Made by a program: the position numbers and the translations under genes
Shown here: piece after piece, positions 3,040 to 24,205 of the stretch
Position numbering within the stretch: the stretch's first letter is position 1
Layout: the number at the start of each line of letters is the position of its first letter
DNA from: Wallemia ichthyophaga EXF-994
Lineage: Eukaryota; Fungi; Basidiomycota
Reading direction: 5' to 3'
Length of the DNA stretch: 32,000 nt
Assembly: GCF_000400465.1 (NCBI RefSeq)
Contig: NW_008806283.1
Coordinates: forward strand, 120,001 to 152,000
The notes under the pieces: generated by a model
The model's input: the letters and a program-made list of their open reading frames with translations, nothing else
What the model was told of the DNA's origin: nothing
Database searches by the model: none

Positions 3040-4007
3040 TAGGTCGTTTACCTTAATTTGTTTAATTTACCATTAGATAGCAATCAATATGCGTTATTTA
3101 CTTCGATGTCTTGTTATTATTCACTTTAGTGCACCTACGAAAAGCACTACAAATGGTCGATTAATCTGATAATTATAATAGTGCATAGCCCATGGAATAA
3201 TGGCGTTTACGCCACCGAGCCTGCTTTAGCTGCTGTTGCGCAGTTTGTGTTATGCACGGCAAGTGATTTTGAGTTGAAAAATAGATTCGAAGTCCACGGT
3301 TATATTATTTTAATCTCTGAATCTACGAAGCCTCAACCATCTCTCCACAATCATTATCAATTTCCCCCAAATGCACCTGGTAAAGTCGAGCTTCCAGTTT
3401 CCAGAGTTGAGCTGAACCCCAATTTTACACTTCAAAGTGAGAGGAGAGTCAAAAATATCTTAGCTTTTCCTCGGTGCTAGGTTTGAGTCCTGTGGTCCGT
3501 AGACCTTGGAAAGCAGAACACGCGTCTAAAAAGGTGAATACTTGGATATTTGGGCATAAGCGATACCTGTCCGCTCTTTACGCTTATAGACAATGAATTT
3601 GCGCGCAATTTCCTGCGTTTGCTCGGTTTCGTGCTCCATAGTGATGCTGAATCCAACTTGTGCCTTGCCTTAATAGCAATAACAGAACCGAAAAGCTTTG
3701 AATTTTGCAACCTTCTTAAAGCTCGCCCAGAGCTATGATGGAATTCCTTTTATTTGAAGATTTCTTAAAGAGGAATCGCCTATGTTCATCTCAGCCCTTT
3801 GTTGGCCAGTTGAAGATCAAGTTGAGCTGATTTCATCCACTCAAGTCAAGCAGAAATCAATTCATTGAAAATGCTAAACTGAACAAACAACAAACCTATT
3901 TAGAGCACAAATAAATGTCTAATAGGTGATTATAAAAATATACATCTGTAAGTGGAACATAAACTAAATTGCAAGTATTTGCATTTAACGAGTGAGCAAT
4001 TATTATA

Positions 4008-4056
4008 CTAAGAACAGAGTCAGCTATGATACGGCTGCGCATATACCATTACTTAC
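4008..4056 (-). other. Consensus spliceosomal intron outside any CDS (probable 3'-UTR intron of the giant gene)
   Basis: Minus strand reads GTAAGT...GCTGAC...TTCTTAG, 49 bp, matching the size of the other introns. It starts 69 nt after the stop at 4126. No open frame spans it. Confidence 0.55.
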
Positions 4057-4125
4057 CTAGGTATATACACGAATTAATAAAAACAAGTAACGAGAGTAAT
4101 AAGTCTGGGGTATTAACATACGCGA

Positions 4126-7100
4126 TTAGCGTGGTTGAGATGGCAATGGCGGTGGGGCAAAGTTTACTGGTGGCTGCCAGCTAAGCCAAGCTGGTGGTGG
4201 TGGTTGGGCTGGATCTTTTGGCTTGTCATCCTTTTTGTTGTTCTCTTTGGCAGGTGGTGCACGAGGATTGTAATCAACCTTTGGCGGAGGTGGTGCGCCG
4301 TTGCCCTGCTTTGACTTGATGGCGAATAATTCACTAATTTCGTGTTGAAGGCCTCTCTTTTGTTCTCTGAGATCGCCAATTTCCTTCACCAAGCCTCGTA
4401 CTTCTGGCAACAGTTGCTTCTTAAACTCATCAACAGCTGTATCGATATTTCCTTTCATAGCAGTAGCATTAGACTTTTCGACGCTGCCAACGGTACTTCT
4501 ATGTTGAGATGTGTTATGCAGAATAATATCAGATGCAACGACCTTTAGCAATTTGCTGTTTTCATCATTTTGATGCTCTATCATATCGCGAATGTCCTGT
4601 AAAGTTGGCTTTGAAGAGGCCTGCTTTAGTCTATCTGCTTCAGCGGTCGTAAATGACGTTAATTGCTTGAGCGAATCAGCAATTAACTTGTGGTGTTCAT
4701 TACGCATCTTGTTAACATCTCCCAGCTGAGATTCTAGTTTCGATCTCTCAGCTTCAGCATCCTTTACTTTCTGCTGTAACTCAGCCTTCTCCTTTTCTGC
4801 ATTTTTATTTCTCTCTTCAGAGAGTGCCCTTTCAACAGCAAGTATTTCATTCAGTTTCTGTGAAATTGTGAGTAAAAAGAACGGCTCCCTTTGGAAAATA
4901 CCTACGCTGTGAGCATCATCACGTTCCTTTGATGCAGTGTTTGCCTTATCCTCAAGAGCACCTCTTTCAGCATCGCTCATTCCAGTAGCTGGTGCTTCCT
5001 TGGCAGCCTCCTTTGAAGGCTCACCAGGGAATGCTTTACTGAGGATATCCAAGATAGAATCAATACCAGGATCGCGACGATGTTGACCATTGGTAGCATC
5101 ATTGAGCACATTTTCCACCTTCTGGGCGGCTTCTGGAAGATCAGTAGAGTTTGGATCCGCAGATCCTGCGCCTGGTGTTTGAGGTACATCACTGAGTGCT
5201 CTGGTGGTACCTGCTGGTGAAGGGCCTTTGGTACCTGGTTCAAAAGCAGCGGCTTCGTCAGGAGCTTGTGAAGCATCGCCAAATGTTGATGGATCGCCTC
5301 CAGTGGCGACATCTTGTACCTTGTCGACAGGATCCTCAGAGCCTGGCTCAGTACCAACATTGCCCATGCTCATGGTTTCACCATCTCCAGAACTGTCCTT
5401 TTTGCCCTTCTTGCCTTTACTACCCTTTCCACCTTTTCCGCCATTTCCACCGGAAACTGGAGCAGAGCCATCAGCAGCTGGAATGTCAGCAACTGGTGGA
5501 GCACTGTCATCGCCTGAAGCTTGAGGAGCGTCACTGAACGCATTGTCCTTGGCTGGTGAGCCTAATACTGGATGTACATGGTTATCACCTGGAGCTTGAG
5601 GTGCGTCACTGAGTGCTCTAGTAGTACTCGCTGGTAAGGGGCTTTTGCCGTTCGCGTCAGAGAAACCTGGTGGGATTTCATTCGCGGTGGCTTCTTGTTC
5701 GGCAGGAGCTTCAGCGTCTGGCTCAGTGCCAACTTTACCAATGCTGTTGACCTCATCGCCCTTTTTGCCCTTGCTACCCTTTCCACCTTTTCCACCAGCA
5801 ACTGGAGCAGCGCCATCACTCGCTGGCGTTTCAGAAACTGGTGGGATACTGTCACCACCTGAAGCTTGCGGAGCATCACTTAGCACGTTATCGTGTGCTG
5901 GCGAGCCTAACATAGGAGGGAAATTAGCGTCTTCTGGAGCTTGTGAAGCATCGCCAAGTGCTCTTGTGGAACCTGCTGGTGAAGGGTCTTTGACGTTTGC
6001 GTCAGGATATTCTGCGGTGATTTTGTCTTGTGCTTGGTCAGAAGGAACTGCAGCGTCTGGTTCACTTCCAATATTGCCCATACTCCTGACTTCGCCATCT
6101 CCGGCACTGTCCTTCTTGCCCTTCTTTCCTTTTCCTTTCTTTCCACCTTTACCACCGGCTATTGGAGCAGCGCCATCAGCACCTGGCGTTTCTGCAGCTG
6201 GAGGAACACTTCCATCGCCTGGAGCTTGTGAGACATCACCGAGCACGTTGTCATGGGCTGGCGAACCAAACATGGGAGGGAAACTGTCATTCGCCGAGTC
6301 TTGTGGGGCGACGCCAAGTGCACCGGCAGTATCTCCTGGTGAAGGACCTTTACTTCCTGGTTCAGCAAACTTAACATTTCCAGGTTCTTGTGGAGCATCG
6401 CCAAGCGCTCTAGTAGAGCCTGCAGGTGAGGGTCCCTTACCATTTGAGTTGGAGTCACCTACTAGATTCCCACCAGCAGCGGCTTCTTGTTCAGCAGGAG
6501 GCGCAGGGGGTGCAACGTCTGGCTCACTCCCAACATTGCCCATGCTCCTAGCTTCTCCACCTCCACTACTGTCCTTCTTGCCTTTCTTGCCCTTACTACC
6601 CTTTCCACCTTTTCCACCGGCAAATGGAGCAATTCCATCAGCGTTGCTCCTGGCTGGGGAGCCGAAGACTGGAGATACGCCAGGCTGAAGACTGAGAGGT
6701 ACATCATGTTGTTGATCACCACCCGGAGTAGGCAGACGCGTGATTTCTGCGATTCTTGTTAATCATTGCTACGCTAACAAGCTTTACGTACCATTTCCAG
6801 CAGCATTTTGTGGTTGAGCATCTGAGTTTTGTGGCGCATCACCGAGGGTTCCTGCCTCACCAGCATGATTTCCCGTGGGAGATTGAGAGCTATTAGGCTG
6901 AGAAGCATCACCGACGAATGGCGGATCAGCTGGTGTTTCAGCTTGAGGAGCGATACCTCTATCAGACTGTGGAGGAGCTTCACTAGCTGCTTTCCCAGGT
7001 TGAGGAACATCACTGCCGACCGAAGCATCGTTTGCGGCAGTGCTTGGAGGAACAGTGCTTGGAGGGGCGGCACTACCAGGAGCATTACTAGAACCCTTAC

Positions 7101-10100
7101 CAGACTGAGGAGCATTGCTGCCACCTTTTACAGATCTGCTGCCACCCTTGCTAGATCCAGGCGCCTTACCGGCAGGTTTCCCGGGCGGTGGAGCATTGCT
7201 GCCGAGTTCAGTTGGCGCAGAAGAAAACCCTACTTTTCTGTCCTGGGGAATACCAGATTCAGGACCATCTTCGAGCTCTACACCCTGGCCGACAGGGGAT
7301 GGGACGTGGCTTGGAGCCCCATGGTTAGGCCCGACATTGCTAGCTGAGTGAGAAGGAGCAATACCATCCGGAGCCTGGCTGCCAGGGTCAGCTGGCCCGG
7401 AGCCAAGGTTTCTATCTGAGGGAGGAGCACCACCGAGTTCACCATCCTGGCGGTAAGGTGATCCAGCGTAACTTGGAGCGGCATGACTTGGAGCATGACT
7501 TGGAGGAACGTTGCTATCCGCATGAGTTGGTGCTTGCTCCTGTGGTGGATATTCATTTGTATCAGCACCTAAGGTAGCTTCACCTGGAGGCGGTGATCCG
7601 GCTTGAGTGCCAGCGTGACTACCAACGCCGTGACTTGCCGGTGGCTTCTGAGGCGAACCTCTACCTTTGCCTTTTCCTAGAAGCTTGTTGAGTCCTGGAA
7701 TCTCCTCTGAGAATGGCTTATTAGATCTAAGAGCTGCGAATGGTGGTCCCTTCTCTCCTGAATTTTCTTTACCTTCAGGCCTGCCTCCAGTGGATCTGAC
7801 AGCTCCGTCATCAGGAAGCACTGCACCTACTTCGCCTTCAGGTTTGCCTCCCATGGATCTGGCATCACCTTCATCAGGAAGCACTGCACCTTCTCCTTCC
7901 GGATTCATGCCTTGGGGTTTCCCATCTACAGATCTAGGACCACCCTCATCAGGAAGTGACGCACCTTGATCGTGTTGACCGTGTTCAGATGGCAATTGCG
8001 ATCCAGTCGCCTCATTCTTATGCAATCCTCGCATCGTATCGGCAGGGGGGGTAAATGAGGAACAATATCAGCAAGATCTGGATCTTCCTCACCAGCGTTA
8101 GAAGGGTCTCCCATTCCACGAGAGCCGCCTGATGGATCGGCCATACCACGAGATTCGCCCGATGGGTCAGGCATACCACGAGAACCGCCTGACGGATCAC
8201 CCATTGAGTGAGGCTCTTGGCCATTAGTAGGTGTAATACCACGAGATGCTCCGGAAGGACCGGGCATAGTATGAGGGTCGGCCGCGGTCGACGGCGCCAA
8301 TCCGCGACTGTCACCAGGTGGAATACCCCTCGAGCTATTAACTGAATCGCGAACATCGCGCAGTACTACCTCCATCTCCTTGATTTGGCGCTGAACAGGA
8401 CCCCACTCGTTGATCTTGGCTGACACCTCTCTCTCGAGCCAATTGTTGAGTGCCCTGTGGCGTTGTCAGACAAGAGGTAATGAGATAATCGACAATTGGA
8501 CTTACCCCAGATATCTATCTGCATCCATCTGGTGTCTCAGAATCTCTTCCGTATTCCATCCAGCTCTTCTTGTATTGTACAGCGTTTCGTTGACTGAATG
8601 TGAATAATTAGATAAAGGCTGCATTCCAGAATAATCACTCACAGCCTGGATGGAAATCAGAGCCGAATCGGAGAGGTATACCCATCCCTCCAGGTGGGAC
8701 ACCCGGCGGAGGCATTTGCATAGGTCTTGCAAATGAACCGCCTCTCATGCCATCCATCATAGGAGAAGGCCTGAACGTGGGATTAGGTCTGAACGTGGGG
8801 TTGTTTCTCATTGGGGCTGATCCATTCATTGGCATAGGACCAGCACCATGCATTGGGCCTGCGCCCATACCAGCAGGTCTCATCAGTGGTGGACGATATG
8901 GTGCACCACCCATCTGCGGAGGAAGCATTGGAGGATGGAATCCCCTCAAATTGTTCGCAGCTGGTCTGACGAATCCGTTAAAGTTAGGTGGCGGTCTAAA
9001 CCCGCCTCTGACATTGTATGGCATAGGCATGGCCATATGAGGTCCTCTCATCATTGGCGGTCGGCCTGGCATTGGCATAGCCATTCCATTGGGTCTGATA
9101 GGCGGAGGTCTGTTGAGACGTTCGAGAGGAGGTTTGAAATCGTGAGTATTGCTTTCCTTCTCAGTCCGTGGATATCCGCCTTCATTAACTTGTATTCTTG
9201 GTGTTGGCTGACGCTCTGGAACTGGATCTGGCACTGGTTTCTGCAATGTCTCTCGTGGTAGCTCTTCAAGGTATCCCTGTTCGAGCGGTGGGCCAGGTTC
9301 TGGATCGTAGACATCGGGGTACATGACATCGTCGTACTCCTCATCCGCCGTTTCAGTAGAAACACTTGAGAGCGACTTGGCAGGTGGTGACTCAGACCTC
9401 GCCCACCGTCTGCGCGAAGTGAAGTCCCTCTCGGCTCTTGACAAGTGAGGAACCTCAGGCTCCGAATATTCGTGAGATGCGTATATAGGCGGAGTTGGGA
9501 GGGGTCCCATTAGATCCCTCATGGATATTGAGTCATGCGGGTACATGTCATCCACGCTAGGCTGAACCTGCTCGACAGCCGGTTTTTGCGTTACTGTCGA
9601 GCTAGATGCTCCATCATCCAGCTCCGCATCTAAATCAGCACTTAGTTCCTCTCCATCGTCGTCAAACGGATGTTCTGACATCATGTCTGGCCAGCTGGAT
9701 ATACTTGAAGCACCACCCTTAGTGAAGTGTCCTTTAAAAGGAGTAAGTAAGGCTGACTTAGGAGAGATTTTTACCCACTGATTAAATTTCTGACAAGATT
9801 CTCCAATCTTAACATATGAGCGTTGTTTCGCTCCTCGTTGGCATCTCTGATACGCTTATCACTCCCAGTAGAATCGAGAGCATCGCGGCAGACATCAATG
9901 AGTCCATTTACCTTATTCTCCAAATCGTGAATAGGCTTGTCATCATGTACTGGCGGTGGAGGGATGTATGACATACTTGACTTCTTCCTCACATCGCGAA
10001 GAAGATCACCGGACCTGTTATCAAAGCTTTCGGGTTTAGGCTCAGACGGGAGATCAGGCACTGATTGATTATCCGTAAGCTTGCCCTCGGTTGTGACAGA

Positions 10101-13100
10101 AATGTCACCACTGCCCCTTCTCCTAAACGGAAGTACTCTGATTGCGTCAGCTAAGCCACCGAGCTCCTTTTGGATAGCATTAAGGATATCGTCAGTATTG
10201 TTAGTCCTACCCGATTCTCTGGCTAGCAACGCATTGAATAGCTTCTGGAGCTCAGACGTGAGGAAATTTTTATCCAACTCTCCGTGAACCATATCTTGAG
10301 TGATAGTTTTCGCATCACTGCTTCTATCTAATGGGATTGAGGTACCCTCGGATGATTCTGAAATAATCGTCGGCGCCAAAAACTTCGAATCGATCGTTGA
10401 GGAGCGCGACACAGTTGATACAGTCGTTGGAGCTTTCCTGCTAACCAAAGACGACACTCTTGACGGAGGCCACACCGATTCAGGTGAAGCTGTGCGCGAT
10501 GGAGCTAACAAATCCATGTCAAAGTCGTCTTCCTCGTCCTCAAACTCTCCACTCTCACTAGCAGCGTCAACACCAGCGCTCTGCTCGGGTGGAGGTACAT
10601 CTGAGCGTGCCTTGAACGAGCTCTTCTGAGACCTGCTTCTGGAGGGCTTCGTTGATGATTTCTTGGAAGACGACACGGATGGAGTTTTTCTTTCAGTTGT
10701 GTTGGGTTCAGTGGTGTTGGTTGGGATATGAGCTGATGCTGATGGGGAGCTGCTCGTGTGAGGCGAAGGTTGAGTTGTCGGTGGTGCTTGTGTAGCTGTA
10801 CTCGTCACGACAGGGGTGTTGGAACTAGGTGAGTTAGTTTGAGCAGTGTGGTACTCTGTCGACATAGTTTTTTCTTTGCTCTGAATTTTTGAGGAACGGT
10901 TAGATGAAGCGTTGCTGACCACCTTTTTCATTCCACTTCGTCTGCTCAAAGGCAGACTCCTCTCAGTTGGAGTGCTGTTTTGCTCAGGTGTGCCACTCTT
11001 GCTCTTGCTGATCAATTCGGTCAAAGCATCTTTCAATTCCTGATCCTCAGAACTGTCACCTAGCGCATCAACTAACTGAGCTAGAGACTTATGCGATGTG
11101 GACAGTCTCTCAGCTCTCTTCACCGTCGAAGGATTGGATGACTTTCTCGACAACGACCTTAGCAGCTCATTGGTGCTTGCGCCATTTTCTGCAGTTTCTC
11201 TTGTATCAATTTGGGATGGTTGCTGGGATTGAGAGGGGTAGGAAGAAGGGAGGGAGCGCATTAAGTCAGTGGTGTTTTGAGCGTGGGTGTCTTGAGGGTC
11301 TTGAGTGTGATAAGTATCATGCGTACTCTGTGCACCCATTTCAGGAGTATTTTGAATAGATATTGCAGAATGAGTGCGAGAATGGGATCTAGATTTCCCT
11401 GAATGGTTTGACTTGGGTGTTGTTGCAGTTTCGGGTTGCTGAGGAGAGGGTGTATCCTGATTCTCTCGCTCAATCTCAGTCTCCACAAGCTCTTTCTCCT
11501 TCTCCTTTTCTAACTCCTCCACCTTCTCCACCTTTTGAGGCACACTATTTGCCGACTTTGTCTTTGAATCTAATCCTGATCCTGAACCTAATCCTGAAGC
11601 TGAAGCTGATTGAGTCTCGACATCCTCCTCATCGGCATCTTCAGCCAGCTGACCGAGCTTGGGCGACCTGAGCATTCTCTCTGTGCTAGCGCCAATGCTC
11701 TTAGCGTCGCTCTTCTTCGATGCGGACAGGATAGTTGAAGTTGAGCTAGACGACGATCCACCACTACCGCCTCCGCTCCCACTCGCGCTGTCATCAGATG
11801 ACCTTCCCGACATTTTCCTGCGCCCGCCTCTTCTGTGTGCCCTAACGGACACAGACGGAGGGAAAATGATATCGTCAGCCTCGCTGTCATTTGCACTTCC
11901 GTCTCGAGTGTCTCGCGTGTCTCGCGAGTCCCACGTATCTGAAAGGATGCCCAATCCGCGCACAGTGTCTGAGGTGGACGTACCGGCGACCAACCCAATA
12001 GACGAATCATCAAGACTCTCCCTCTTCTTTTTCGACGTCGACGACCTGCCTCTACTTCTGCTCTTCTGGATGCTGCTGTTCGACTGCTGTTCTGAGTCGC
12101 TAGCTGTAGGTTCAGGAGCGCCAAAATCCTCAGACCTGACGTTAAAAGCGGACACCGAGCCAGCGTTGGAATTGGATGGTGATACCGGTCTCCTGACTAT
12201 AGGTGTGCCAGTGAGGGTGGTTTGACCGGGCAAGAGGGGCGAGTTTCTCGATGTGGCAGATGTGGCGGACGAAGCAGATGTCGAGGCAATCGAAGGCGCT
12301 CTAACAAGCATCCTGGTCTGGGGAGTCTGTATGGGTCTGATGACATCCCAGAATGCACCGACCCATTGTACACGCTCACGGGCGCTATCTGTAGCCAACC
12401 TCTCCCAGCCATCTTGATAGACGAGAACGAAGGGATTAAGGACACCCTCTAAACCACCCTGCTCGCGTGCGGCCACTAAACCGAGATCCAACTTGTGCGA
12501 TGCGGGGTTAGAAGGACTTGCGACGGAGCGGACTTCTGAGCAATGGTTGAGGTCAAGGGTGACAATCTGACGCTGTAGTCTAAAGCTGGACAAGTCAGGT
12601 GATGGTAGGAATGAAAGTTTGAGGGTCGTTGGTAGAAGCGCGGCTCTAGCACGTACCCATCGATAGGGAGTGCCGTCGTGTACGTGAAGATACCAGAGAG
12701 TGCCAGCACGAGCAATCTAGAGAGGAGATTTAGAATGTCTCAGGTAAAATTAAAATGAAAGAGAAAAAGCAAAACTTACCTGTTCAGTGATATCATCGAA
12801 GCTGGACAAGTCTATTGGAGAAGTGGGGCGCTGGGAGGTCATAGGAGTTTTATGTGAGGAAAGAGGGGTGGAGAAATCCGTTGGGGTCGACGAGCTGATC
12901 AAAGTTTCCCAGCCGTCGGTGAGACTTTCGTGGTGGGTGGGTGAGGGTAAAGATGGTAGAGAAGGCTGAATCTGAGTCTGTTTGCGTGGACGTGGTTTAT
13001 TATCGTCCTTGTTTCTGTTGAGGTTGATGGGGCGCTTTGTTTGAATGACTTTGCTGATTGGAGGAGAGGTGCTATGCTCAGGTCTCTGCTGAGGTCTCTG

Positions 13101-13685
13101 CTCAGATTTCTGCTCAGATTTCTGCTCAGATTTCTGCTCAGGCTTCTGCTCCTCCTTCTCCTTGCCGCTTTCGAAAAAGGCAATGAGGTTACCAGCCCTG
13201 CTGCTAATTTCAGAGTTGGCAGAGTTGGAAGCAGAATTGCTCCTTGAGTGGGAAGACTGCTGATCGAAAGTGATGAAGGGGGAATCACTGAACGCTGGTG
13301 TATCGAGCCGTGCCGAGTACTGCGAGGGGATCGACGGGATAGAGCTAGGCTGACCAGATGAGCGAACAGAAGCACTTCTAGAGGCGCTCGATATGGTTGG
13401 GATGTGCTGCGAGCTCGATGGTGGCTGTGAATTGCCGTCTCTACTCGATGGCGATGGAGAACTGAGCGTTTCAGCGTCGTCGATTGATTTGATATCGGGG
13501 GTAAAGCGGGGTAGATCGTCATTAGCGGATGAAGCTCTGCTCCTGTTACTCCCAGCCCCAGTACGGCTATGGCTGTGGCTATGGCTGTGACTGTTGCTCT
13601 GACTCGACGTTGTCGCCGGCTCAGACTCCTCGCCAATCACAGACAAGACGTGGGGAACGTACGGCTGTGATGACTGGCTCGACAT
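4126..13685 (-). CDS. Giant (~3,060-3,090 aa) mostly disordered protein: PH-like domain near the N-terminus, internal repeat arrays, C-terminal coiled coil
   Basis: Phase-compatible introns join the track ORFs: 12779-12717 (63 bp), 9778-9732 (47), 8642-8594 (49), 8505-8455 (51), 6791-6747 (45), and in-frame 4905-4858 (48). One junction near 8092-8017 is unresolved. The spliced PH-like segment reads IARAGTLWYLHVHDGTPYRWVRARAALLP..VTLDLNHCSEVRS..PFVLVYQDGWERLATDSARERVQWVGAFWDV. Helical patches: LGALNNWLEREV and DEFKKQLLPEVRGLVKEIGDLREQKRGLQHEISELF. Confidence 0.8.
5190..6680 (-). repeat. Four-copy imperfect coding repeat (113-154 aa period) with a Gly/Lys-rich polybasic core
   Basis: The anchor motif GGKGGK..KGKK..(M/I)G(N/K)(V/I)G(S/T)EP occurs at 6543, 6081, 5742 and 5367 (spacings 462, 339 and 375 bp). 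P(V/M)(F/L)GSPA appears 4 times and variants of GPSPAGSTRALGD 5 times. Confidence 0.9.
7770..7965 (-). repeat. Three-copy coding repeat GA(S/V)LPD(E/D)G..RS..G(K/R)P(Q/E)G
   Basis: Plus-strand CATCAGGAAG-containing units at 7809, 7872 and 7947. Confidence 0.8.
8107..8200 (-). repeat. Three-copy 30-bp coding tandem repeat DPSG(G/E)SRGM
   Basis: Translation DPSGGSRGMP-DPSGESRGMA-DPSGGSRGMG; ATACCACGAGA-like units on the plus strand. Confidence 0.85.
13075..13152 (-). repeat. 12-bp coding minisatellite, about 6 copies (EQKP/EQKS/EQRP)
   Basis: CTGCTCAGATTT x3 perfect, plus flanking variants. Confidence 0.9.
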
Positions 13686-13918
13686 TAGCTCTCTTTATGC
13701 CCGCGTCAGCTGTTATCGACATATAAAAACTCCACTCACAGCTGCTCAAGCACTGCAGCCTCCTCTGGCCGTAGATCTTCATCTTGATCTACTGACATTG
13801 TCTTTCTTTTTTGTTTCTTTTTTTTCCTCGTGGTTGTCGTTATGCAACCGTAAATGCCGTGATGATCAGGCATCTTTTTAAATATCTAAATTCGTAATTA
13901 AATCAATTGACACTATAT

Positions 13919-14113
13919 TCACGCGTTTCTACATCTAGATCCCCTTTTGGCCCCTCCTCATCACGCGTTTTCCCTTCCGCCCCTGTTCACTCACCTTCTA
14001 CTCCACTTTAGGTTCAAAAATTTTCGGAAAAGTTTTGTGTGGGGTGCGGAATATATTTGTGTGGAACATGTTTCAAAGGTGTGCTGTGCAAGACATGCTT
14101 ATTTTTCGCGTTT
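13919..14113 (-). promoter_or_regulatory. Candidate MCB/SCB-like cell-cycle boxes upstream of the giant gene
   Basis: TCACGCGTTT at 13919-13928 and 13961-13970; TTTCGCGTTT (minus strand AAACGCGAAA) at 14104-14113. All lie in a ~540-bp intergenic region, long for this window. Confidence 0.4.
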
Positions 14114-14226
14114 AAATACCTTTAAATCAACTTTAAGTGCGTTTGTGACGTGACTTTATGCACGGTAATGCACGGTGGCGTGAGTTAATGTGATACCATG
14201 TGATTTAAAAGCCTATAGAGTGTATA

Positions 14227-16289
14227 TCATCTGCAATATGTCAAACTTGTACACACGAATATTTTACTTAAGATTATTTTGTTGAGTTGCTGATCAAACA
14301 ACGGTACATTTCTATAACCTAAGAAGGGAAGTGTAATAGTTAGCAGCGTCACAACCACACACACTCCACAAACCCACCTAATTGCATCTGTGCGAGTGTA
14401 ATGGCGTAGCTAGCCACAGCCTCCTCATGCTGACTGCTAAGCACATCAAACTTGACGACGACAAGGTCTATCATGTTCCCTCTAACATTAACGTCGAAAC
14501 TGAGTGTTTCATTCCATGTAGGGTTTCCTTCCACCTGCCCATGCGATTGCAAATTTGCCGTGCTGGTGAAGCGTTTAAGACAAGTGTCATTATTGAAGGA
14601 ACGCGGTGTGTGCACCTCTACCGCCACTTTATTCACATTCTTCGACACTTGCTGCGCGCATATCACCTTAATGGAAAGACGCACCAGCCCCTTCAATTCC
14701 ACCATCCTCTTCTCCTCCTTGTTGCGCAAAGGTGATGGTTTCAACACATACCCGCCTGTATCATTGAACAAGGCGAAATTCAACCACATGGCCAAGTCCA
14801 CCGTCTGGTAATTGAGCGCTAACAGTTGCGATCCTACCGCCCAATAATCTAATACATCAAAATTAGTACTCTTCACTCTTGCTCCGTGTGGGTATATCCT
14901 TGTGAGATGATTGCGGTTGTGCTTCATAAACTCCCCACTACTCGCGTTTATCAGCTTCCGCGCTGATCTGTCAGACAAACTGAACATATGCTCTATTTCG
15001 TAATGCTCTTTCTTGTTGAAGCCTCGAAACTTTACACCCACTGTGTAGATTAGCAGATCGAGTAATTTCTGTGACATTTTAGTGTTATTTGTGTTAACTG
15101 CGTTATCCGTGTTATTCGTGCTCGTCGTCGAGTTGAGATTCCCAAATGAGTCGACAAGTGTGGGCGAGGTGGATGCAGTTGAAGATCTGTCAGATGAAGA
15201 TGCAGTGCTTCTTCGTCGTGTGACTTTCTGTATAAAGTTGCTCAACTTGCTCTTTTCAATGTCAGAGCTTGATGAGTGGGAGTGAGAGTGGGAGTAATCG
15301 GATGAGTTTGAGTTAAGTGCAACGTCAAAGCCATCCACCTTACTTGCCGCACTACTCCCACTTGCACTGGTTATGTGCAGGTTTTTAGTCTTGAATAGAA
15401 TCTTGTAGCGTAGTTGGTGTGGAGACGGTAGAATGTCTCTATCGTGTTGTAGCCTCTGAGTGATTAGCAAGTCACCGAGAATATCCACAAACAACCCAGC
15501 CATTCTATCTTGCTGTGCTAGATCACAGTGGTTCTCCACAGATAAAATCAAAGGCAGATTAGAAGAAATAAAGGCGAAAGTGTTGATTGTGGTGAGTATG
15601 TCGATTAGGGGGATGGGTTGGGTGAGAGTATGGCCGTGGTAGACAATAGGCCAACCATCGTCACCATTCCAAACGTCAATTTCTACACTTCTACAGCCCA
15701 GTAAGAGTGAGCGTATGTAGCCGATAGTGGTGGAAGAGCCAGCAAGTTGATTACCAAAGAGGTATGTGTTATGGGAAGCGCTAATGTAATAATTATAGAG
15801 TGGTTCATTTTCTGTGGTATTTTGTGGTTTTTGCAATGAATTCTCATTGGATTGAAGGTATCGATTGAATTGGAGTGTATTGAGTTGTGAAGGGGTGGAA
15901 TTGCATACGAAATCTTGCTGAGTGTGTTTTACAAACTCCTTGAAGTCATTTGGAGTGGATATTGGCAGGTAAGATGTATTATGAGTGCTGGTGCTGCTGC
16001 TAGAGTGTTTATCACCGGTAAACTCGCTGTGAAGGAGAATGAGATGCTTTATAAATGATTGATTCCCCCCTTGTAAATCAAACAAATCTAACTTTTTAAA
16101 TTTATTTGTCTTTGAGCTATTAAAGTAGATTGATAGGTGTGATCCATTTGAGTCGATGTAGACAATATCACTGAGTGGAATCAAACCCTCTTTCTTTGAA
16201 TTATATAGCAATCTCCGATCAGACAGTACAAATTCCTTTAATTTCACTTTTTTATTCGTTATTTTCATTAATTTCGCTTTGGAATCCAT
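14227..16289 (-). CDS. PLC1: Phosphoinositide-specific phospholipase C (PH, X, Y, C2; ~667 aa)
   Basis: X-box YYISASHNTYL..GCRSVEIDVW..VYHGHTLT..LSVENHC; Y-box RIYPHGARVKSTNF..GSQLLALNYQT; C2 domain. Last intron 14377-14319 (GTGGGT..TTAG) gives the typical tail GYRNVPLFDQ. First ATG is at 16289. Confidence 0.95.
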
Positions 16290-16308
16290 AGCTCTGGTGG
16301 CTTGGGAA

Positions 16309-16654
16309 ATGGCTTCGACATCAGAGAACAAGATATCCAATTTGGTGGGTTTTCATGGGTTATAATAATGAATAAGCTAATGGCCTTGATAGACAGACAA
16401 ATGCGTCGCTAACTTTGCAGTCAAAGCAGCAGCTGGATTGGGTGTTGGCGTGCTCACATCAGCCATCATATTCAAGAGAAGAACGTGGCCAATTACGTTG
16501 TTTACCGGATTCGGTGCTGGATATGCATACTCAGACTGCAACAGGTTGTTTAATCCATTGGCAGGTGGGTGAAATGTGTTTCTGATTTACAAACTAAAAT
16601 TGCACAGTACCCGGTTTAAAGATACAACAGCCAGATCAAGCTGATCAAAAATAG
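16309..16654 (+). CDS. MIC10: MICOS complex subunit Mic10 (84 aa)
   Basis: Not in the ORF track. Exons 16309-16344, 16393-16564 and 16608-16654. Protein: MASTSENKISNL-TDKCVANFAVKAAAGLGVGVLTSAIIFKRRTWPITLFTGFGAGYAYSDCNRLFNPLAVPGLK. It shows the GxGxG motifs in both TM segments and the KRR loop characteristic of Mic10. Confidence 0.92.
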
Positions 16655-16691
16655 AATAATTTGTAGCGTTGATTGATTTCGATTTCTCTTG

Positions 16692-16952
16692 ATGGAGGAC
16701 TACGATTTTGACAGTGATAATGAGTTTAAAGCTGGTTTGAGGCGTTTGGGGGATAATCCATCTGATGAGGTGGTTCAACAGGCTAAACAGTTTTACTACG
16801 CCAGACTCACACCTAGCTTGAACAGCGTGGTTGAGGCGATTAACACTGGTAAATCTCTTTCACTACCGCACACAAGCACAATTCCGAGCACGGTCGTGGC
16901 AGACCAACCATCATCATCCTCTACGCAGCAGCCAAAGAAGCCGTGGGATTGA
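16692..16952 (+). CDS. PEX39: Pex39/DUF5572-like small protein (86 aa)
   Basis: N-terminal YDFDSDNEFKAGL..AKQFYY, SLNSVVEAINTGK..IPSTV and C-terminal PKKPWD resemble the DUF5572 family with its (R/K)PWE motif. Recognised from memory. Confidence 0.6.
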   Translation: MEDYDFDSDNEFKAGLRRLGDNPSDEVVQQAKQFYYARLTPSLNSVVEAINTGKSLSLPHTSTIPSTVVADQPSSSSTQQPKKPWD

Positions 16953-17003
16953 GGTGTCGTTTCTGGTTCTTATGTCCAATGTCTCATCTATCAAATACTT
17001 CAC

Positions 17004-18377
17004 TCAGTCGAGTCTTCTCTTATAAACCTCCAAATCAACGCCATGACTCGCAAGCAATCCCAATAAATGTCCCTGGGAGTCGATACTCTCACCGCTGTAC
17101 TTGATTCGCTCATGGATAATCCTCACCATAGCCTCATACTTAGCATCCTCCACCTGCCAATTAGGATGTTTAACTTGGACAGGCTGAGTGATTTCCACCG
17201 CTCTCTTGAGGAATACCTGACTGTTATTGATTAGTGTGGTATAGTTTACATTCCCGCTGCCAACGAGCAGAGCTCTCAGTGTCGACGCACCCGCGACAGC
17301 CATAAGGATCTTAATTTGGTTAGCGAGTGACTGAGGATCGATACTGCCGATGGATTTAAGTGCTATTTCCATCTCGAGTGCTGCCTTGAAGAGGGACTGC
17401 GCCTCACATAGCAATTCCCAGCTGGAGACGCCTGAGACGCCACTCTTAGCCACTTCTACCAACACCTCTGCCAGCTCGCAGTGTGCTTCTACTGCCCCGC
17501 TATCTCTTCTCCCGCTGCGCAACTCGAGCACGTGTCTAAACTCAGCCACTATTGTTTGAGCCTGTGATTGAAATTGCGGTTGTGGTTGTGATTGCGATTG
17601 TATTTGCATCTGCAACTCTCCTAGGTGTATTTTGGCCTGTAGGAGGAGAAGCGTGTCTGTCTCCTTGAACTGCTCATCGACTGCGTTGTTGAGGGTGAGT
17701 GCCTCGTTGAGGGCCATCTGCGCGTGTGCCAGAGTGTGATCAGTGTTTGTGCTAGTGCCATCATCGACATCGACCACATCCTGCAATTTGAGCAGCACAT
17801 CAACGAGAATTTTGATATTCTGCACGATTTGATAGGGTGGGAGGGAGAGTGAGAGTGAGGCGCCGCCGCCAACATCCATAGCAGCAGCAGCAGCATAACC
17901 ACCACTGTCCGCACCCACAAAAGACTTCTGTTCTGCCACTAAACCGCGCAACAAATCGACGCAATGGGAGAAGGCATCAGCAGCGTCACGATCCGCCCCC
18001 AAATCAGCATGCAGTTCACCAACAGATACAGCAGACTGAATTGCGTTGTAGAGAGCGTCAAACCTGCCGATTTGGTTGGGTGGGTTGAATCGACCAGCGA
18101 CCTCCGCCGCGCTGATGAACAAACGATACGCCTCTTGCAGATAGACAAACGCGTCCGGAGGATGCTTATAGCCGCCACCAATCTCTAGACGTAGGCGAGC
18201 AGAGTTGTAGAGTGCGTCGTAGTGACTGCCCTGCTCACTCTCAAGTACCGCCGCATAGAGCGACAAGGCCTTCTCGTATCTCGCAACAACTTTCACGTCG
18301 TATCCCAATCTCTCAGCCTTATCTTCAATGTCCACCGCTTCGTCGTAGATTTCTTCTATGTCTGTGTGTTTGGGCAT
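17004..18377 (-). CDS. TPR-like alpha-helical protein (457 aa), possibly UPF0656-like
   Basis: Long clean ORF. Repeated helical units such as YEKALSLY..YDALYNSARL and FDALYNAIQS. Family assignment is tentative. Confidence 0.7.
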   Translation of the reverse strand: MPKHTDIEEIYDEAVDIEDKAERLGYDVKVVARYEKALSLYAAVLESEQGSHYDALYNSARLRLEIGGGYKHPPDAFVYLQEAYRLFISAAEVAGRFNPPNQIGRFDALYNAIQSAVSVGELHADLGADRDAADAFSHCVDLLRGLVAEQKSFVGADSGGYAAAAAMDVGGGASLSLSLPPYQIVQNIKILVDVLLKLQDVVDVDDGTSTNTDHTLAHAQMALNEALTLNNAVDEQFKETDTLLLLQAKIHLGELQMQIQSQSQPQPQFQSQAQTIVAEFRHVLELRSGRRDSGAVEAHCELAEVLVEVAKSGVSGVSSWELLCEAQSLFKAALEMEIALKSIGSIDPQSLANQIKILMAVAGASTLRALLVGSGNVNYTTLINNSQVFLKRAVEITQPVQVKHPNWQVEDAKYEAMVRIIHERIKYSGESIDSQGHLLGLLASHGVDLEVYKRRLD

Positions 18378-18497
18378 ATGCGTGGGTGTGGTGGTGTAAG
18401 AATTGCTGATCGATTCAGATATCTATATCACTGTAGGGTATTTGGTTTCAATCTCACTTGCATTTCAATTCAAACTTCCTTTTCCGTCTTGTCGCTT

Positions 18498-18956
18498 ATG
18501 TGCACCCATTTCACCTACAAAATCAGTAGCAATGGCTACACACGCAAGCAGACACAGACACAGAAACTGGGCTACGAGGAGATATTGCAGGTATCTGCGC
18601 AACTCCACTCCATTCCACTCAAATGCATAGCCAGCCTGGGTTGGAGAGATAGCGACGGTGACGAAATAACGTTCAATTCAGACTTGGAGTTGGAGTGCGT
18701 GTATCAAGAGCAGGGGAGGAGTATTTCGGTGTGGGTAAACACAAATACCCAAGTAGCTTCTTTGGAATCCCCGGTATACGCCCAGCACGTTTCCTTGGCG
18801 GGAATTAGTGGGGAGAAGACGGAAATGAAGAATGAGTTGAATAAGCTGAGGGAGACATTGACAGCCCCGCCTCCACCTACGAGCACACGTCCCAACGCTG
18901 TTTACAGGGCACAGCAAGTGCTTTTACCCATACAAGGACCACCTGGAGAAGGATAA
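18498..18956 (+). CDS. Small PB1-domain protein (152 aa)
   Basis: Acidic OPCA motif LGWRDSDGDEITFNSDLELE, preceded by a basic beta strand (FTYKISSNGYTRK). First ATG in this frame downstream of the TPR-like gene start. Confidence 0.7.
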   Translation: MCTHFTYKISSNGYTRKQTQTQKLGYEEILQVSAQLHSIPLKCIASLGWRDSDGDEITFNSDLELECVYQEQGRSISVWVNTNTQVASLESPVYAQHVSLAGISGEKTEMKNELNKLRETLTAPPPPTSTRPNAVYRAQQVLLPIQGPPGEG

Positions 18957-19045
18957 TTATAAAAATACTCATATTCATTCCAATTGCTGTTGTATTTCGA
19001 ATATTCATGTATTTTGCTTCGTTACACCTCTCAAACACTCCAAAC

Positions 19046-19285
19046 ATGCGAGAAAAGAGACAAGAGAAATCCAACACACAAACCACGGAAGAAATCTGCA
19101 GAGACGTCGTTCGACACCTATCAACAGCTCAAATACCCATCAAACCGCTTCCAAGCGTGGAGGAGGTGTTGCGCGAGTCTCATTTGGCCTTCGTTCGTGG
19201 AGAGGGGGTTAGCAACGTGATCGAAAGACTCAAAGGTGCTAGGCTAACTGCTGCCAGACTACCCGGTGCCTGGGTGGAGTTGTAA
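19046..19285 (+). CDS. Small hypothetical protein (79 aa)
   Basis: caaacATG context after an AT/C-rich leader. MREKRQEKS..ICRDVVRHLS..LPSVEEVLRE..ARLPGAWVEL*. No family recognised. Confidence 0.5.
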   Translation: MREKRQEKSNTQTTEEICRDVVRHLSTAQIPIKPLPSVEEVLRESHLAFVRGEGVSNVIERLKGARLTAARLPGAWVEL

Positions 19286-19320
19286 GCATCTTTGTGTTTA
19301 CACCTTCAACACCCTCCATC

Positions 19321-19596
19321 ATGCCACAAGCATACAGATTAGCAGATATAGCACACAGATCATTCGTTAGTGTATTGGCAGGTGTTACTGTGAGTCGTTG
19401 AGTGTTACACAGCCACTCTCAACTTAACAGCTCCAGATATACGGCACTTTCACTCTTCTATCGGGCTACAACAACCACAAGCAAATGAGATTAGAGGCTC
19501 TTGAGAGGCATCAAGTGGGTTTGGAGTAAAAGCGTGTGCCTGTAGCTAACACTGGCTATTCAGATGTCCCTAAAGGAGGAAGAGAAGCAGATATAA
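19321..19596 (+). CDS. COX14: Cytochrome c oxidase assembly factor Cox14-like (59-61 aa)
   Basis: Not in the ORF track. Exons 19321-19389, 19437(or 19431)-19514 and 19564-19596; introns GTGAGT..CAG and GTGGGT..GCTAAC..CAG. YRLADIAHRSFVSVLAGVTIYGTFTLL resembles the yeast Cox14 motif [20 protein letters not shown]; single TM segment followed by a charged tail. Confidence 0.78.
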
Positions 19597-19632
19597 TGTA
19601 TTAAAATTTATATTTATTCTAATTTACTTGAT

Positions 19633-21081
19633 CTAAAGCATCCCCTCTACACCCATCCACAGCAGGAACCTCGTGAACAAACTAACTTTACGTTGTGGCT
19701 GCTTGAATGTCTTCTCACTAACCTCAGTACTGCAGCTATTCAATTCCTCTACCTCCCCTTGCAGCCTCTTTTTCAGCTCGCCACTACTCGTCATCAACAG
19801 AAAACTCAACTCAAGGTCGAGATTGCTACTTCGTCCACTGAGGTTCGAACTGCCGATGAGAGTGGCCATAGCATCATCTGCACTCTTCTCATTACGTATC
19901 CATAGCCCTTTGCAGTGGTAAGTCCAACCATTTCTCCGCCATTCTTTCAATTGGAGTGAGTTATGGCGGTGGTGTTTGATAGACGATGTGTAGAATTTAC
20001 TCATTAGATGCGTATATGCCTCCGGTATACGCCCACTAACTCCCCTGCTACCTAAAAATCCATTAGCATCCGGTGATGCAGCTATTATCCATGTCGGTAC
20101 TCGACTCTCCATTACGCGCCGCTTGTAACCCCCACCCAAGCTAAAGTAACCAGATGTCATGTGAAGTATAGCGCCAGGAATGCTGTTGATTGCGTCAAGA
20201 AGATAGTGCACCGAATCCTCCTCCTCCCTCACACCCCACAAACCAGACTGGATGAGCGGATAAATGGTGGTGTCGTATTGTGGCTGGTCTACTTGTTCAT
20301 TACTCATGCGACACTGTCTGCGAGTGAAGTGTTCCATCTCCTCACGCGCTTTATCGCTGAATGCACTAGCTGGTGCATCATTCTCCCATCGCACATCATC
20401 TGAGTCGCACAGTTTATAACTGAAGCGCGTCATTAACTCGACAAAAGCGCGTAAATAGTTGGATAACTGGAAATGATCAGTAATTTGCATATATCTGTCT
20501 TGTCTGTTTGTGAAATAAGACGTGTTTAGATTCGCCCCCGAAAGAAGAACAGTGTCATCGAAGCAGTATATCTTGGTGTGTTGTGTACCAAAACCTTCTA
20601 TAAATCTGGGCGGTATAAACCGTTGTAAGATGCCCAAATTGGTGTTTGGTTTGTGGAGAAATACCCTCACTCTATTGCCAAAGAGGCGTACCAGAGGGGA
20701 AATCAGACTGGCTGGTGAGTGTGGTGGGTGTGCTTGGCGTGTAAACCTATTGAAATCGGCGAGTATAGTGACTGTGAGCTGCTGATTCTCTCTCAGACGC
20801 CGCTGCAACAGTCCCACCAACTCATTCTGTTCTTCGCCGATATAGAGGGTGGAAATGTAGATAGAGCGTTGGGCTGTGTTTATATGATGTATAAATCGCC
20901 TATGGAAGTCAATAGGCTTGCTCAACAAGTCAATTTGCTTCGAATTTGCTTTGAAAGAAGGGTGTCTGTTGCACAGCCAGGGGTATAATTCATCGATGCG
21001 ATGTGGGTGATGTGTGCCGTGACTTGTGCCTTTAATTGGAATCTTCGGGATCTGATTGAACCAGTTCCTTAAGAAACCCAT
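19633..21081 (-). CDS. PGS1: CDP-diacylglycerol--glycerol-3-phosphate 3-phosphatidyltransferase (482 aa)
   Basis: PLD-superfamily motifs QHTKIYCFDDTVLLSGANLNTSYFTNRQDRY and WTYHCKGLW; IYISTLYIG; TLIGSSNLSGRSSNLDLE. Confidence 0.95.
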   Translation of the reverse strand: MGFLRNWFNQIPKIPIKGTSHGTHHPHRIDELYPWLCNRHPSFKANSKQIDLLSKPIDFHRRFIHHINTAQRSIYISTLYIGEEQNELVGLLQRRLRENQQLTVTILADFNRFTRQAHPPHSPASLISPLVRLFGNRVRVFLHKPNTNLGILQRFIPPRFIEGFGTQHTKIYCFDDTVLLSGANLNTSYFTNRQDRYMQITDHFQLSNYLRAFVELMTRFSYKLCDSDDVRWENDAPASAFSDKAREEMEHFTRRQCRMSNEQVDQPQYDTTIYPLIQSGLWGVREEEDSVHYLLDAINSIPGAILHMTSGYFSLGGGYKRRVMESRVPTWIIAASPDANGFLGSRGVSGRIPEAYTHLMSKFYTSSIKHHRHNSLQLKEWRRNGWTYHCKGLWIRNEKSADDAMATLIGSSNLSGRSSNLDLELSFLLMTSSGELKKRLQGEVEELNSCSTEVSEKTFKQPQRKVSLFTRFLLWMGVEGML

Positions 21082-21130
21082 CAAATACTCCCGATGACTG
21101 TCTTCTCGATACCATCACTACCGACAATAG

Positions 21131-22890
21131 ATGATTGATGATTTCTACGAATATTTATCTAACAAATCCAATGGAATCGCTGTAGATCATCTAAAACTGG
21201 TTAGCTGTCTTCTACTGAGCTACCCACTCTCTCACTGTGAGCCCAACCACTAAATACGGTATCATCCACTCAAAGTCCCCTAGTATTCTTGCGTATTCCA
21301 CCTCAATATCCAAATCTACGTCACGCCTTTAATCTATCCTCTTCTCTTTTCTTCCTTGTCGGGATATTCTCACTTAAATGGGGTCTAATCAACCTCATCC
21401 TAAACTCTGTCATTAGTTACTCCCTGGCACACACTCTATCCAGGTACAAACACATGCCGTGGATCGTTATGGCTTTTGCCATGTCACACCTCCTATGTTT
21501 CCACCTACGACGCCTAATCCACACTACTCCCTCAACCTCGGTCGAAATCAGCGGTAGTCTGATGGTTCTCATCCAGCGTACAACCACCTACGCCTGGAAT
21601 GTCCATGATGGCTGCTGTACCGATGCCGAATTGCAGGAATTGCAGGATCACCAGAAAGACAACCGCGTCACCCACAAACCCTCCCTCCTCGCTTTCCTCG
21701 CTTACACTCTCTACTTTCCCGCCATCCTCGTCGGTCCTGCGTTCCCATACGACGCGTATGCCAGTTTAGTGGATGATAGTCTATTTGAGACACCGCGCCC
21801 GCGCAAGCTCAAACTCAAAGGACGCAGACGGGCTGGATATCGTAGAATGGTATTTGGGTTATTTTTTTTGGCCATCTACGCGGTGTGGGGGGGATCCGCT
21901 GATATGTCCCGCCTCATTGACCCTGCCTGGCAGCGCAACCACACCATTCTGCGCCGCATCCTCTTCGTGCAGAAAGCAGGCGTCATTACTCGGTTTAAGT
22001 ACTACGCAGTCTGGTCCATCTCTGAGGGCGCGTGCATCATCTCGGGTCTCGGCTTCAATGGCTACAACGCCGCTAATGGGCGCACGCGCTGGGATCGGGT
22101 GCGCAATATCGACGTGCTCAGCGTAGAGCTGGCGCAGAACATTAAGGAGCTACTAGACGCGTGGAATATGAACACTAACATTTGGCTCAAGACTTGCGTA
22201 TATCTTCGCATCACTAGTCGTGGTGAAAAACCTGGTTTCGCGTCCACCCTCTTCACCTTCCTCACGAGCGCTTTCTGGCACGGCCTGCCTTTGGGTTACT
22301 ATCTTACATTCGTCTTCGGTGGGTTCCTCCAAGCTCTGGGGAAGATGGTGCGCAGGAATGTGAGACCGTTTTTCATCGCTACTGATAAACAAGGTGAACA
22401 AATTGAACAAGGCAAACACCTCAAATACCTCTATGATGTACTCTCCATCATTACCACACAGACGCTCATCAACTTTGCCGTTATCCCCTTCCTGCTTCTT
22501 GATTGGAGAGATAGTGTACGAGGATGGAATAGCGTGTGCTGGTATGGCGTAGTGGTGGTCGCGTGTGCTTTCGCCTATTTCAAAGGTTTCGGTGGCGTAG
22601 GGAGGTTACAGAGCAGACTACAGAAGCAGCAACGCGATGATACGCTCAACGACCTCCTCTTCGACGCCACCCCTACATCTGAGTTGAGAGATAGGGTGGG
22701 GCTGGACGAGGAGCTGTTGACAAGAGACGTTGACGAAATGATTCAGAAACTACTCTCTAATGGCTCACTCGCCAGTCGCGAAGCTGCGGATCAGATTAAG
22801 GATATGAGCAGCGACGGGAAGGCTATAACAAAGGCAGCGGTTAAAGACGCTGTTGAGGGAAATAGAAGTGGGAGTGGGAGTGAAATTTAA
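21131..22890 (+). CDS. ALE1: MBOAT lysophospholipid acyltransferase (570 aa)
   Basis: Exon 21131-21236, intron 21237-21283 (47 bp), exon 21284-22890. N-terminal HLKLVSCLLLSYPL; RFKYYAVW; AWNMNTNIWLKTCVYLR; catalytic-His motif TSAFWHG..GYYLTF. Confidence 0.95.
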
Positions 22891-24088: not shown

Positions 24089-24205
24089 AGGAAAATAACG
24101 AATTTTGGTTACGATACAAGACTTGTATAGCTAATGATGCTAATGATACTAATATTGATTATATTAAACTACATGGACAGATAACTGAGTTTGTACATCA
24201 CCACG

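Follow-up and report, generated by a model that had tools for sequence, protein, structure and literature searches.

A giant PH-domain protein of Wallemia ichthyophaga, very probably encoded by one eight-exon gene of an uncharacterised basidiomycete family

Does a long series of open reading frames (ORFs) in the genome of Wallemia ichthyophaga EXF-994 represent one gene for a giant protein, or several neighbouring genes? The ORFs are located between positions 13685 and 4126 of a 32,000-nucleotide stretch of contig NW_008806283.1 (assembly GCF_000400465.1, positions 120,001 to 152,000 of the forward strand), which is referred to here as the window and whose numbering is used unless another locus is named. 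An initial annotation of the window, made from its letters alone, had joined six of these ORFs through six GT-AG introns into one gene for a largely low-complexity protein with a PH domain. All long ORFs within the span were found on the minus strand and could be joined into one open coding sequence with a single terminal stop. The span is very probably one nuclear gene of an uncharacterised family that occurs throughout Basidiomycota. This gene runs on the minus strand from the ATG at 13798 to the stop at 4128-4126 and consists of eight exons and seven well-supported short introns (Table 1), and the translated model corresponds to a product of about 3,085-3,110 amino acids (aa) rich in Ser, Pro, Gly, and Ala.

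The 2,529-aa protein of Wallemia hederae gave collinear tblastn matches from 13691 to 4129, all on one strand, and a three-way alignment of the Wallemia sequences was unbroken across every junction. The spliced peptides agreed with the relatives' proteins at ITEQ/IARAG, NLIR/HFT, HPG/FNETLY, RYLG/ALNNWL, and AGN/EITRLP (the slash marks the intron), the first of these junctions being identical in the relatives. At the DNA level, introns were present at all seven positions in W. hederae and at five checked positions in W. mellicola, where a counterpart of the intron at 6791-6747 was not found. Every one of the seven introns had a GTNNGT donor, a CTRAY-like branch point, and an [ACT]AG acceptor. 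Five of them (63, 47, 49, 51, and 45 nucleotides (nt)) had been among the six introns proposed initially; the sixth proposed junction, near 8050, was doubtful, and two introns and the first exon had been missed. The joining of the six ORFs into one gene was nevertheless borne out by the collinear matches, the continuous alignment, the conserved introns, and 26 relatives that carry both ends of the protein in one chain.

Intron 3 splits an Arg codon, as A/GA in the window and W. hederae and as C/GT in W. mellicola; its GTGGGT donor at 9778 was the only one that keeps the frame, and a GTAAAA donor at 9774 was rejected since it breaks the frame. Two further candidate introns were discarded, namely, 12656-12586 in the PH-coding part, which is conserved coding sequence, and 7830-7781, whose removal would shift the frame.

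Regarding the 5' end, the ATG at 13685 that had been taken as the start proved to be internal, with a conserved exon upstream of it. The N-termini of the relatives follow the pattern MS.(V/I)D..(Q/E)D(L/I).PEEAAVLEQL, to which MSVDQDEDLRPEEAAVLEQ corresponds in the window, and the motif E[EQ]A[AV]L..L of this exon is shared with members from Ustilaginomycotina (EEQAVLDMLD). Splicing of intron 1 yields LEQLELMSSQ, the W. mellicola counterpart of which is LEQLEIMSNQ. Another in-frame ATG at 13873 (13871-13873, minus strand) lies 25 codons upstream of that at 13798 with no intervening stop. Translation from it would give MPDHHGIYGCITTTTRKKKKQKRKT through an A-rich stretch, with no match to the N-termini of the relatives, and this extension is probably 5' untranslated region (UTR).

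Near the 3' end, intron 7 is in frame and free of stops, and its retention would add 16 codons, VGIFQREPFFLLTISQ, inside a helix. This peptide is absent from the W. hederae protein (DDAHG/KLNEML), and the W. hederae locus has an intron at the same position. Five bases 3' of the stop, the minus strand continues with two intron-like stretches within 4008-4121, one at 4121-4057 (65 nt, GTATGT..TAG) and the other at 4056-4008 (49 nt, GTAAGT..GCTGAC..TAG), which may represent introns of the 3' UTR or belong to a downstream gene.

Table 1. Features of the gene and of its surroundings in the window
Feature	Position	Strand	Description
Exon 1 (new)	13740-13798	-	ATG at 13798; encodes MSVDQDEDLRPEEAAVLEQ plus 2 nt; matches N-termini of W. 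hederae and W. mellicola
Intron 1 (new)	13693-13739	-	47 nt, GTGAGT..GCTGAC..AAG; same position in W. hederae and W. mellicola loci
Exon 2	12780-13692	-	Ser/Thr-rich disordered N-terminal region; carries SRAGNLIAFFES (13202-13167) and the KSEQ microsatellite
Intron 2	12717-12779	-	63 nt, GTAAGT..TCTAAA..TAG
Exon 3	9779-12716	-	PH domain, then about 850 aa of Ser/Thr-rich disorder and two Wallemia-conserved helical islands
PH domain	12327-12716	-	aa 327-454; seven strands, helical insert between beta5 and beta6, C-terminal helix with invariant Trp
Intron 3	9732-9778	-	47 nt, GTGGGT..CTTAC..AAG
Exon 4	8643-9731	-	Acidic stretch, then Pro/Met/Gly-rich region (9111-8644)
Intron 4	8594-8642	-	49 nt, GTGAGT..TCTAAT..CAG
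Exon 5	8506-8593	-	88 nt; opening part of the conserved mid island, FNETLYNTRRAGWNTEEILRHQMDADRYLG
Intron 5	8455-8505	-	51 nt, GTAAGT..TCTGAC..CAG
Exon 6	6792-8454	-	Remaining mid helix (to 8340), DPSGGSRGM repeats, hypervariable Gly/Pro/Ala/Ser-rich region, frame break at a run of seven C
Bridging GT-AG stretch	8028-8092	-	65 nt; GTGAGG donor, GAG acceptor; only plausible GT-AG at the junction
Intron 6	6747-6791	-	45 nt, GTACGT..ATTAAC..CAG
Exon 7	4906-6746	-	Four diverged tandem units (about 6640-5320), then start of the conserved C-terminal domain
Intron 7 (new)	4858-4905	-	48 nt, in frame, stop-free, GTAGGT..ACTCAC..CAG
Exon 8	4126-4857	-	Stop at 4128-4126; most of the two C-terminal helices, EVRGLVKEIGDLREQKRGLQHE, Pro-rich tail PPPPAWLSWQPPVNFAPPPLPSQPR
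PLD-like	19633-21084	-	ORF-level Pfam match
MBOAT	21289-22890	+	ORF-level Pfam match
Syntaxin-like	24249-25010	+	ORF-level Pfam match
RhoGAP	25266-26885	+	ORF-level Pfam match
RhoGEF	27850-31347	-	ORF-level Pfam match

The doubtful junction near 8050 coincides with a break in the reading frame. The fifth of the initially proposed introns had been given without coordinates, and 8092-8028 is our own candidate for it. No CTRAY branch point was found in this stretch, which still reads the conserved peptide EEDPDLADIVPH in frame 0 and PADTMRG in frame 2, and both peptides match the continuous coding sequence DPDLKELVPHFGDDKAKHPSDTMRG of W. hederae and its counterpart in W. mellicola. Its splicing would delete DPDL..VPH...P.DTMRG, which is coding and conserved in both relatives. 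In the DNA alignment, the break falls on a run of seven C (C7; 8051-8045) adjoining a gap of 16 nt (3n+1), these bases being present in W. hederae and W. mellicola. The two frames could be bridged by any of nine GT..AG pairs; because that many are possible by chance, finding one is not evidence for splicing. The 3.9 kbp downstream of the break are open throughout and, at the C-terminal end, share 87% identity with W. hederae; therefore, the downstream part is evidently translated. Independent sequence from the same species over the C7 run was found neither by exact-product look-ups nor by a 28-nt metagenome scan. As judged from these alignments, the break is most likely a one-base homopolymer assembly error. 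The stretch 8092-8028 is most likely coding sequence that carries a 1-nt frame error or a real frameshift, and splicing there is possible.

Two other explanations of the break were weighed against a single gene with an assembly error. It is rather unlikely that the break is genuine and that splicing skips it through a young, species-specific intron at 8092-8028, one that arose from coding sequence after the 16-nt deletion, in which case the six-intron model would be right at this point and the protein would be devoid of the DPDL..VPH..TMRG peptide. The GTGAGG..GAG stretch does have a length (3n+2) that restores the frame, both its GT and its AG are due to substitutions that set the window apart from W. 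hederae and W. mellicola, and the translated downstream part fits such an intron as well. However, the missing branch point, an acceptor (GAG) of the least favoured type, and a donor without T at +6 distinguish it from the seven good introns. With nine pairs available, a bridging pair is expected by chance; the stretch to be removed also still encodes conserved peptide in two frames. Far less probable still is that the span holds at least two independent genes, a PH protein ending near 7929 and a separate downstream coiled-coil protein, or a recent pseudogene truncated at the frameshift. As sequenced, frame 0 reaches a stop at about 7929 beyond the C7 run, and the orthologue is split in the public annotations of W. 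mellicola, Grifola frondosa, and one Marasmius assembly. Nonetheless, a single chain unites the PH domain with the C-terminal motif in each of the 26 proteins, which come from three basidiomycete lineages, and in a second Marasmius tenuissimus assembly the locus is annotated as one model of 3,632 aa. Moreover, intron 6 joins two further ORFs downstream of the break in the window, the 1,300 downstream codons are open, and the C-terminus is strongly constrained.

The PH domain was identified from its predicted fold. An AlphaFold2 (AF2) model based on a 19-sequence alignment had a predicted local distance difference test score (pLDDT) of 78.7 and a predicted template modelling score (pTM) of 0.72, with strands at residues 3-11, 19-27, 31-36, 51-55, 59-64, 94-100, and 103-109 and a helix at 112-130. 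In a Foldseek search against the PDB, the 50 best matches listed were all PH domains (best E value, 1.7e-6), including those of BTK, DAPP1, TAPP1, PLCgamma2, ASAP1, and anillin, and the target-normalised template modelling scores were about 0.5 for BTK and up to 0.74 for short PH domains. The initial annotation had held that the domain is complete only with the segment 12716-12594, and this was confirmed: the frame is open upstream of the first start-type codon of the ORF, and strands beta1-beta3 are encoded at 12716-12609. Pfam gave no match at E<=1 for the window protein, searched in four pieces, three full-length relatives had no match at E<=0.01, and a PH profile search against PDB sequences gave nothing significant (best E value about 0.9, BTK). 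The modelled domain is accordingly a divergent PH domain, recognisable by fold and not by Pfam.

The sequence of the domain in the window shares all columns that are invariant in the family. Near-invariant blocks were VTLDL..C.EV.S, D.G..AA..Q in the helical insert between beta5 and beta6, and PF.L.Y.DG.ERLA..SA.ER..WV.A.W, and the invariant Trp of the C-terminal helix corresponds to W135 and W140 of the alignment (ERVQWVGAFW) in 13 diverse members. Strand beta2 reads YRWVRAR in the window, which contains RxR, and YRWQRCQ, YKWVQAD, or PHWQRVQ in the family; beta1 ends in LNVH, without Lys.

Outside the PH domain, the order of elements along the chain is fixed: the EEAAVLEQL motif, a LIxFFE motif, the PH domain, the Pro/Met/Gly stretch, the mid helix, hypervariable repeats, a C-terminal helix pair, and a Pro-rich tail. 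When 20 members were compared by BLAST, every one matched over the PH domain, 19 over the C-terminal region (about aa 2890-3045), and six members of Ustilaginomycotina type over the mid helix (about 50 residues, about aa 1685-1732), and the elements never changed order. A Pro/Gly-rich stretch comparable to that of exon 4 was present in the Naganishia sequence. In 20 of the 22 members examined, the motif [KR]xxx[DEN]LIx[FM]FE precedes the PH domain by 150-280 residues. It reads SRAGNLIAFFES in the window (aa 184-195, 13202-13167 minus), RRAGDLIAFFE in Agaricomycetes, KKTSDLIKMFES in Tremellales, and TKAKDLIRMFES in Ustilaginomycotina, and it is likely a docking motif. A reading of AFFESG as FFAT-like (two phenylalanines in an acidic tract) was set aside, as the consensus LIx[FM]FE has neither the acidic tract nor the Asp of FFAT.

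The C-terminal end carries the motif EV..L..[ED][VI]G.[IL]RE..[KR].L downstream of the PH domain, as EVRGLVKEIGDLREQKRGLQHE in the window. AF2 predicted the last 320 residues to form two helices of about 100 residues each (pLDDT 85-94) with a conserved KP turn between them, followed by the Pro-rich tail; the low pTM of this model leaves the packing of the helices undefined. These long helices span aa 2820-3026, with helix 1 encoded at 4974-4618, across intron 7, and helix 2 at 4306-4602. Foldseek found no match for the C-terminal model in the PDB, and nothing significant was obtained when the C-terminal 243 aa were compared with PDB sequences. Two further helical islands are encoded in exon 3 at 10277-10095 and 9932-9779, the second of which runs on into exon 4.

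Identity to W. hederae was 97% in the PH domain, 95% in the mid island, and 87% at the C-terminus, which is conserved in 20 family members, compared with 72-82% in most linkers and 48% in the Gly/Pro/Ala/Ser-rich repeat region. The initially described pattern of long disordered stretches and conserved helical islands was supported. The accompanying figure of more than 80% low complexity needs qualification: by composition proxies, which are crude, about 80% of the chain is disordered-like and about 13% falls in hydrophobic islands, but strict low complexity accounts for only about 25%.

The most variable part contains four diverged tandem units of 345-460 nt (5320-6640, minus strand) with 61-80% DNA identity, each having a polybasic GGKGGKGSKGKKGKK box (at 6618, 6156, 5796, and 5451). 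W. hederae has a single unit with such a box, and the four-unit array is thus a lineage-specific expansion. Periodic antisense and off-frame ORFs in 5320-6640 are by-products of these repeats; plus-strand ORFs inside the span (e.g., 5645-6688) had no family match, tracked the repeat periodicity, and were treated as antisense artefacts. Other coding tandem repeats were observed at 13075-13151 (12 nt x 6.4, KSEQ), 8111-8204 (30 nt x 3.1, DPSGGSRGM), and 7772-7891 (63 nt x 1.9), and the repeat regions vary in length among Wallemia species.

Searches with the full model retrieved W. hederae E3P99_02781 (2,529 aa; 60% identity and 77% query coverage by BLASTP), a C-terminally truncated W. mellicola protein of 1,979 aa, and Naganishia liquefaciens NliqN6_1609 (2,591 aa); the UniRef name of the W. 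hederae and Naganishia relatives is 'PH domain-containing protein'. Each of these two is annotated as a single gene, with which the gene in the window is collinear. For the W. hederae orthologue, collinearity extends from the N-terminal motif through the final residues, and all seven intron positions are shared, along with a nearly identical PH domain. The window protein is about 550 aa longer, mainly owing to its four polybasic-box units in place of one and to expanded Gly/Pro/Ala/Ser stretches. A profile of the PH region, searched over 1.84 billion representatives, matched 326 proteins at E<=1e-3, of which 90 reached E<=1e-30; many of the 326 were 2,300-3,700 aa long. The matches that were looked up were all from basidiomycetes and all named 'hypothetical'. 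Members were found in Agaricomycetes, Tremellomycetes, and Ustilaginomycotina, including Heliocybe (H. sulcata A0A5C3NHR9, 3,312 aa), Chiua, Plicaturopsis, Lyophyllum, Pluteus, Marasmius, Kwoniella (K. newhampshirensis IAR55_004393, 3,323 aa), Cryptococcus sp., and Cryptotrichosporon, as well as Moesziomyces, Thecaphora (T. frezii, 3,100 aa), Violaceomyces, Kalmanozyma, Ceraceosorus, and Jaminaea. The PH domain lies at about residue 900-1,300 in the Ustilaginomycotina members, instead of at 300-550. The 26 retrieved, independently annotated proteins in which one chain has the PH domain as well as the C-terminal motif had lengths of 1,687-3,742 aa (median, 2,992). The existence of an uncharacterised basidiomycete family with the same PH domain and C-terminal EV..L..E.G.LRE helix, which had been put forward in the initial annotation, was thus confirmed by the relatives found; contrary to what had been supposed there, its members are not shorter than this gene. 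The PH region was also used in word-indexed searches, whose matches were for the most part short fragments out of metagenomes and sequencing-run assemblies and included no orthologue with a locus tag in a model organism.

Annotations of the relatives differ in how they treat the locus. In the W. hederae model, the first intron (6063-6117 of its locus), being in frame in that species, is translated, which inserts WVEKKRYDEMEANTQCS. In W. mellicola (locus 12157-15296), the 1,979-aa protein is followed by a separate downstream gene of 464 aa, probably its missing C-terminal part. In Grifola frondosa (locus 8460-20132), a PH fragment of 254 aa is annotated, and the genes of 443, 1,789, and 667 aa that flank it on the same strand may be parts of the same gene; M. 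tenuissimus has models of 2,492 and 766 aa in one assembly and of 3,632 aa in the other.

The analyses support the structure of the gene, its orthology, a PH fold, a helical C-terminus, and the pattern of conservation. From the architecture, we tentatively propose that the product is a long flexible tether or scaffold, a possibility that we hold at well below even. At one end, the LIxFFE motif and the PH domain would attach to a specific partner or a membrane; at the other, the pair of C-terminal helices would form dimers or bind another structure; and the proline-rich and polybasic linker between them might recruit SH3-, WW-, or profilin-type or acidic partners. A role at the septum, at the cortex, or in a condensate is speculation. 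Less likely than a tether is a soluble hub or condensate scaffold, for example a nuclear or ribonucleoprotein-associated one, in which the PH-like domain would bind protein and the KGKKGKK boxes would serve as nuclear localisation or nucleic-acid-binding elements. The unconserved phosphoinositide-binding signature, the Ser/Thr/Pro/Gly-rich disorder of most of the chain, the four Lys-rich boxes with additional KKKR and RRGGRRK stretches, and near-invariant PH surface residues that suggest one specific ligand would all suit such a hub. The polybasic boxes are lineage-specific, however, with one in W. hederae and four in the window, and Pfam scans of the window protein and three relatives found no RNA-binding or nuclear domain, which also counts against it.

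Overall, the best explanation, to which we assign a probability of roughly 60%, is one gene of a basidiomycete family whose frame break is likely an assembly error and whose product might act as a flexible tether or scaffold. Several points weigh against it. The gene model was built on genomic sequence; the whole protein is not encoded as given unless a base is changed at the C7 run or a poor intron is accepted; and the orthologue is divided in the annotations named above. The Pfam, PDB-sequence, and Foldseek searches gave no functional handle beyond the PH fold, and literature searches returned no paper on the family and no member with a published function. Since no match or studied member assigns a function, the proposal of a tether is drawn from architecture alone. 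The basic KXn(K/R)XR phosphoinositide signature of the beta1-beta2 region is unconserved across the family; membrane anchoring is consequently not established, and anchoring of the product through its PH domain is unproven.

Directly upstream on the same strand lies a gene for a phosphatidylinositol-specific phospholipase C (PI-PLC X and Y domains; 14349-16340, minus). This adjacency is kept in W. hederae (locus 3582-5384) and W. mellicola (locus 3767-5627) and not in Naganishia or Grifola. A functional link between the two genes was rejected because, of the genomes compared, only the three of Wallemia have the adjacency, and it is best read from this comparison as genus-level synteny, not a functional cluster. 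The region 19633-31347 is rich in genes of lipid and small-GTPase signalling, assigned from ORF-level Pfam matches only (Table 1).

For this genome, the outcome is a corrected gene model, with one exon and two introns added and a probable one-base error or real frameshift flagged. The gene adds an orthologue to a family that had already been annotated, though not studied, and that by similarity is conserved across Agaricomycotina, Wallemiomycetes, and Ustilaginomycotina. More broadly, a phylum-wide family of proteins with 2,000-3,700 residues is without a Pfam model, a name, or a studied member, and public annotations often fragment its genes or read through their short in-frame introns. With its LIxFFE motif, divergent PH domain, mid helix, and C-terminal helical pair, the conserved architecture offers concrete starting points for initial functional work in a model basidiomycete.

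Among known fungal tethers, the window protein presumably resembles the Leashin and septal-pore SPA proteins of Pezizomycotina, which are likewise very long and mostly disordered with short conserved islands. These proteins are not known to have a PH domain or to occur outside Pezizomycotina. No sequence relation to them was found. The family is also present in yeast-form basidiomycetes (Naganishia, Kwoniella, and Cryptococcus sp.), and this speaks against a function limited to septal pores, the components of which are the subject of PMC10023807. The other comparison is with Num1 of Saccharomyces cerevisiae, a 313-kDa cortical anchor with an N-terminal coiled-coil/BAR-like domain and a C-terminal PH domain that binds phosphatidylinositol 4,5-bisphosphate (PMC2199608, PMC3308694). 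No match to Num1 in sequence or fold was seen in the Pfam, Foldseek, or PDB-sequence searches, and homology is unsupported. The domain order is also reversed, as in the window protein the PH domain (aa 327-454) comes first and the helices (aa 2820-3026) last. Like the window protein, the ascomycete cortical anchors of this kind (Num1, Mcp5, and ApsA), which tie dynein or mitochondria to the cortex, are giant; they combine a PH domain and a coiled-coil domain for assembly with internal tandem repeats and extended non-globular parts. That the family forms a basidiomycete two-ended cortical or organelle tether, similar to Num1 or to tethers between the endoplasmic reticulum and plasma membrane but unrelated to them and of reversed polarity, is a doubtful proposal. 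Equally doubtful is its assignment of the attachment modules, in which the LIxFFE motif with the divergent PH domain would be one and the 200-residue C-terminal helical pair the other. As an analogy, Num1 is plausibly the closest functional counterpart of such a two-ended tether.

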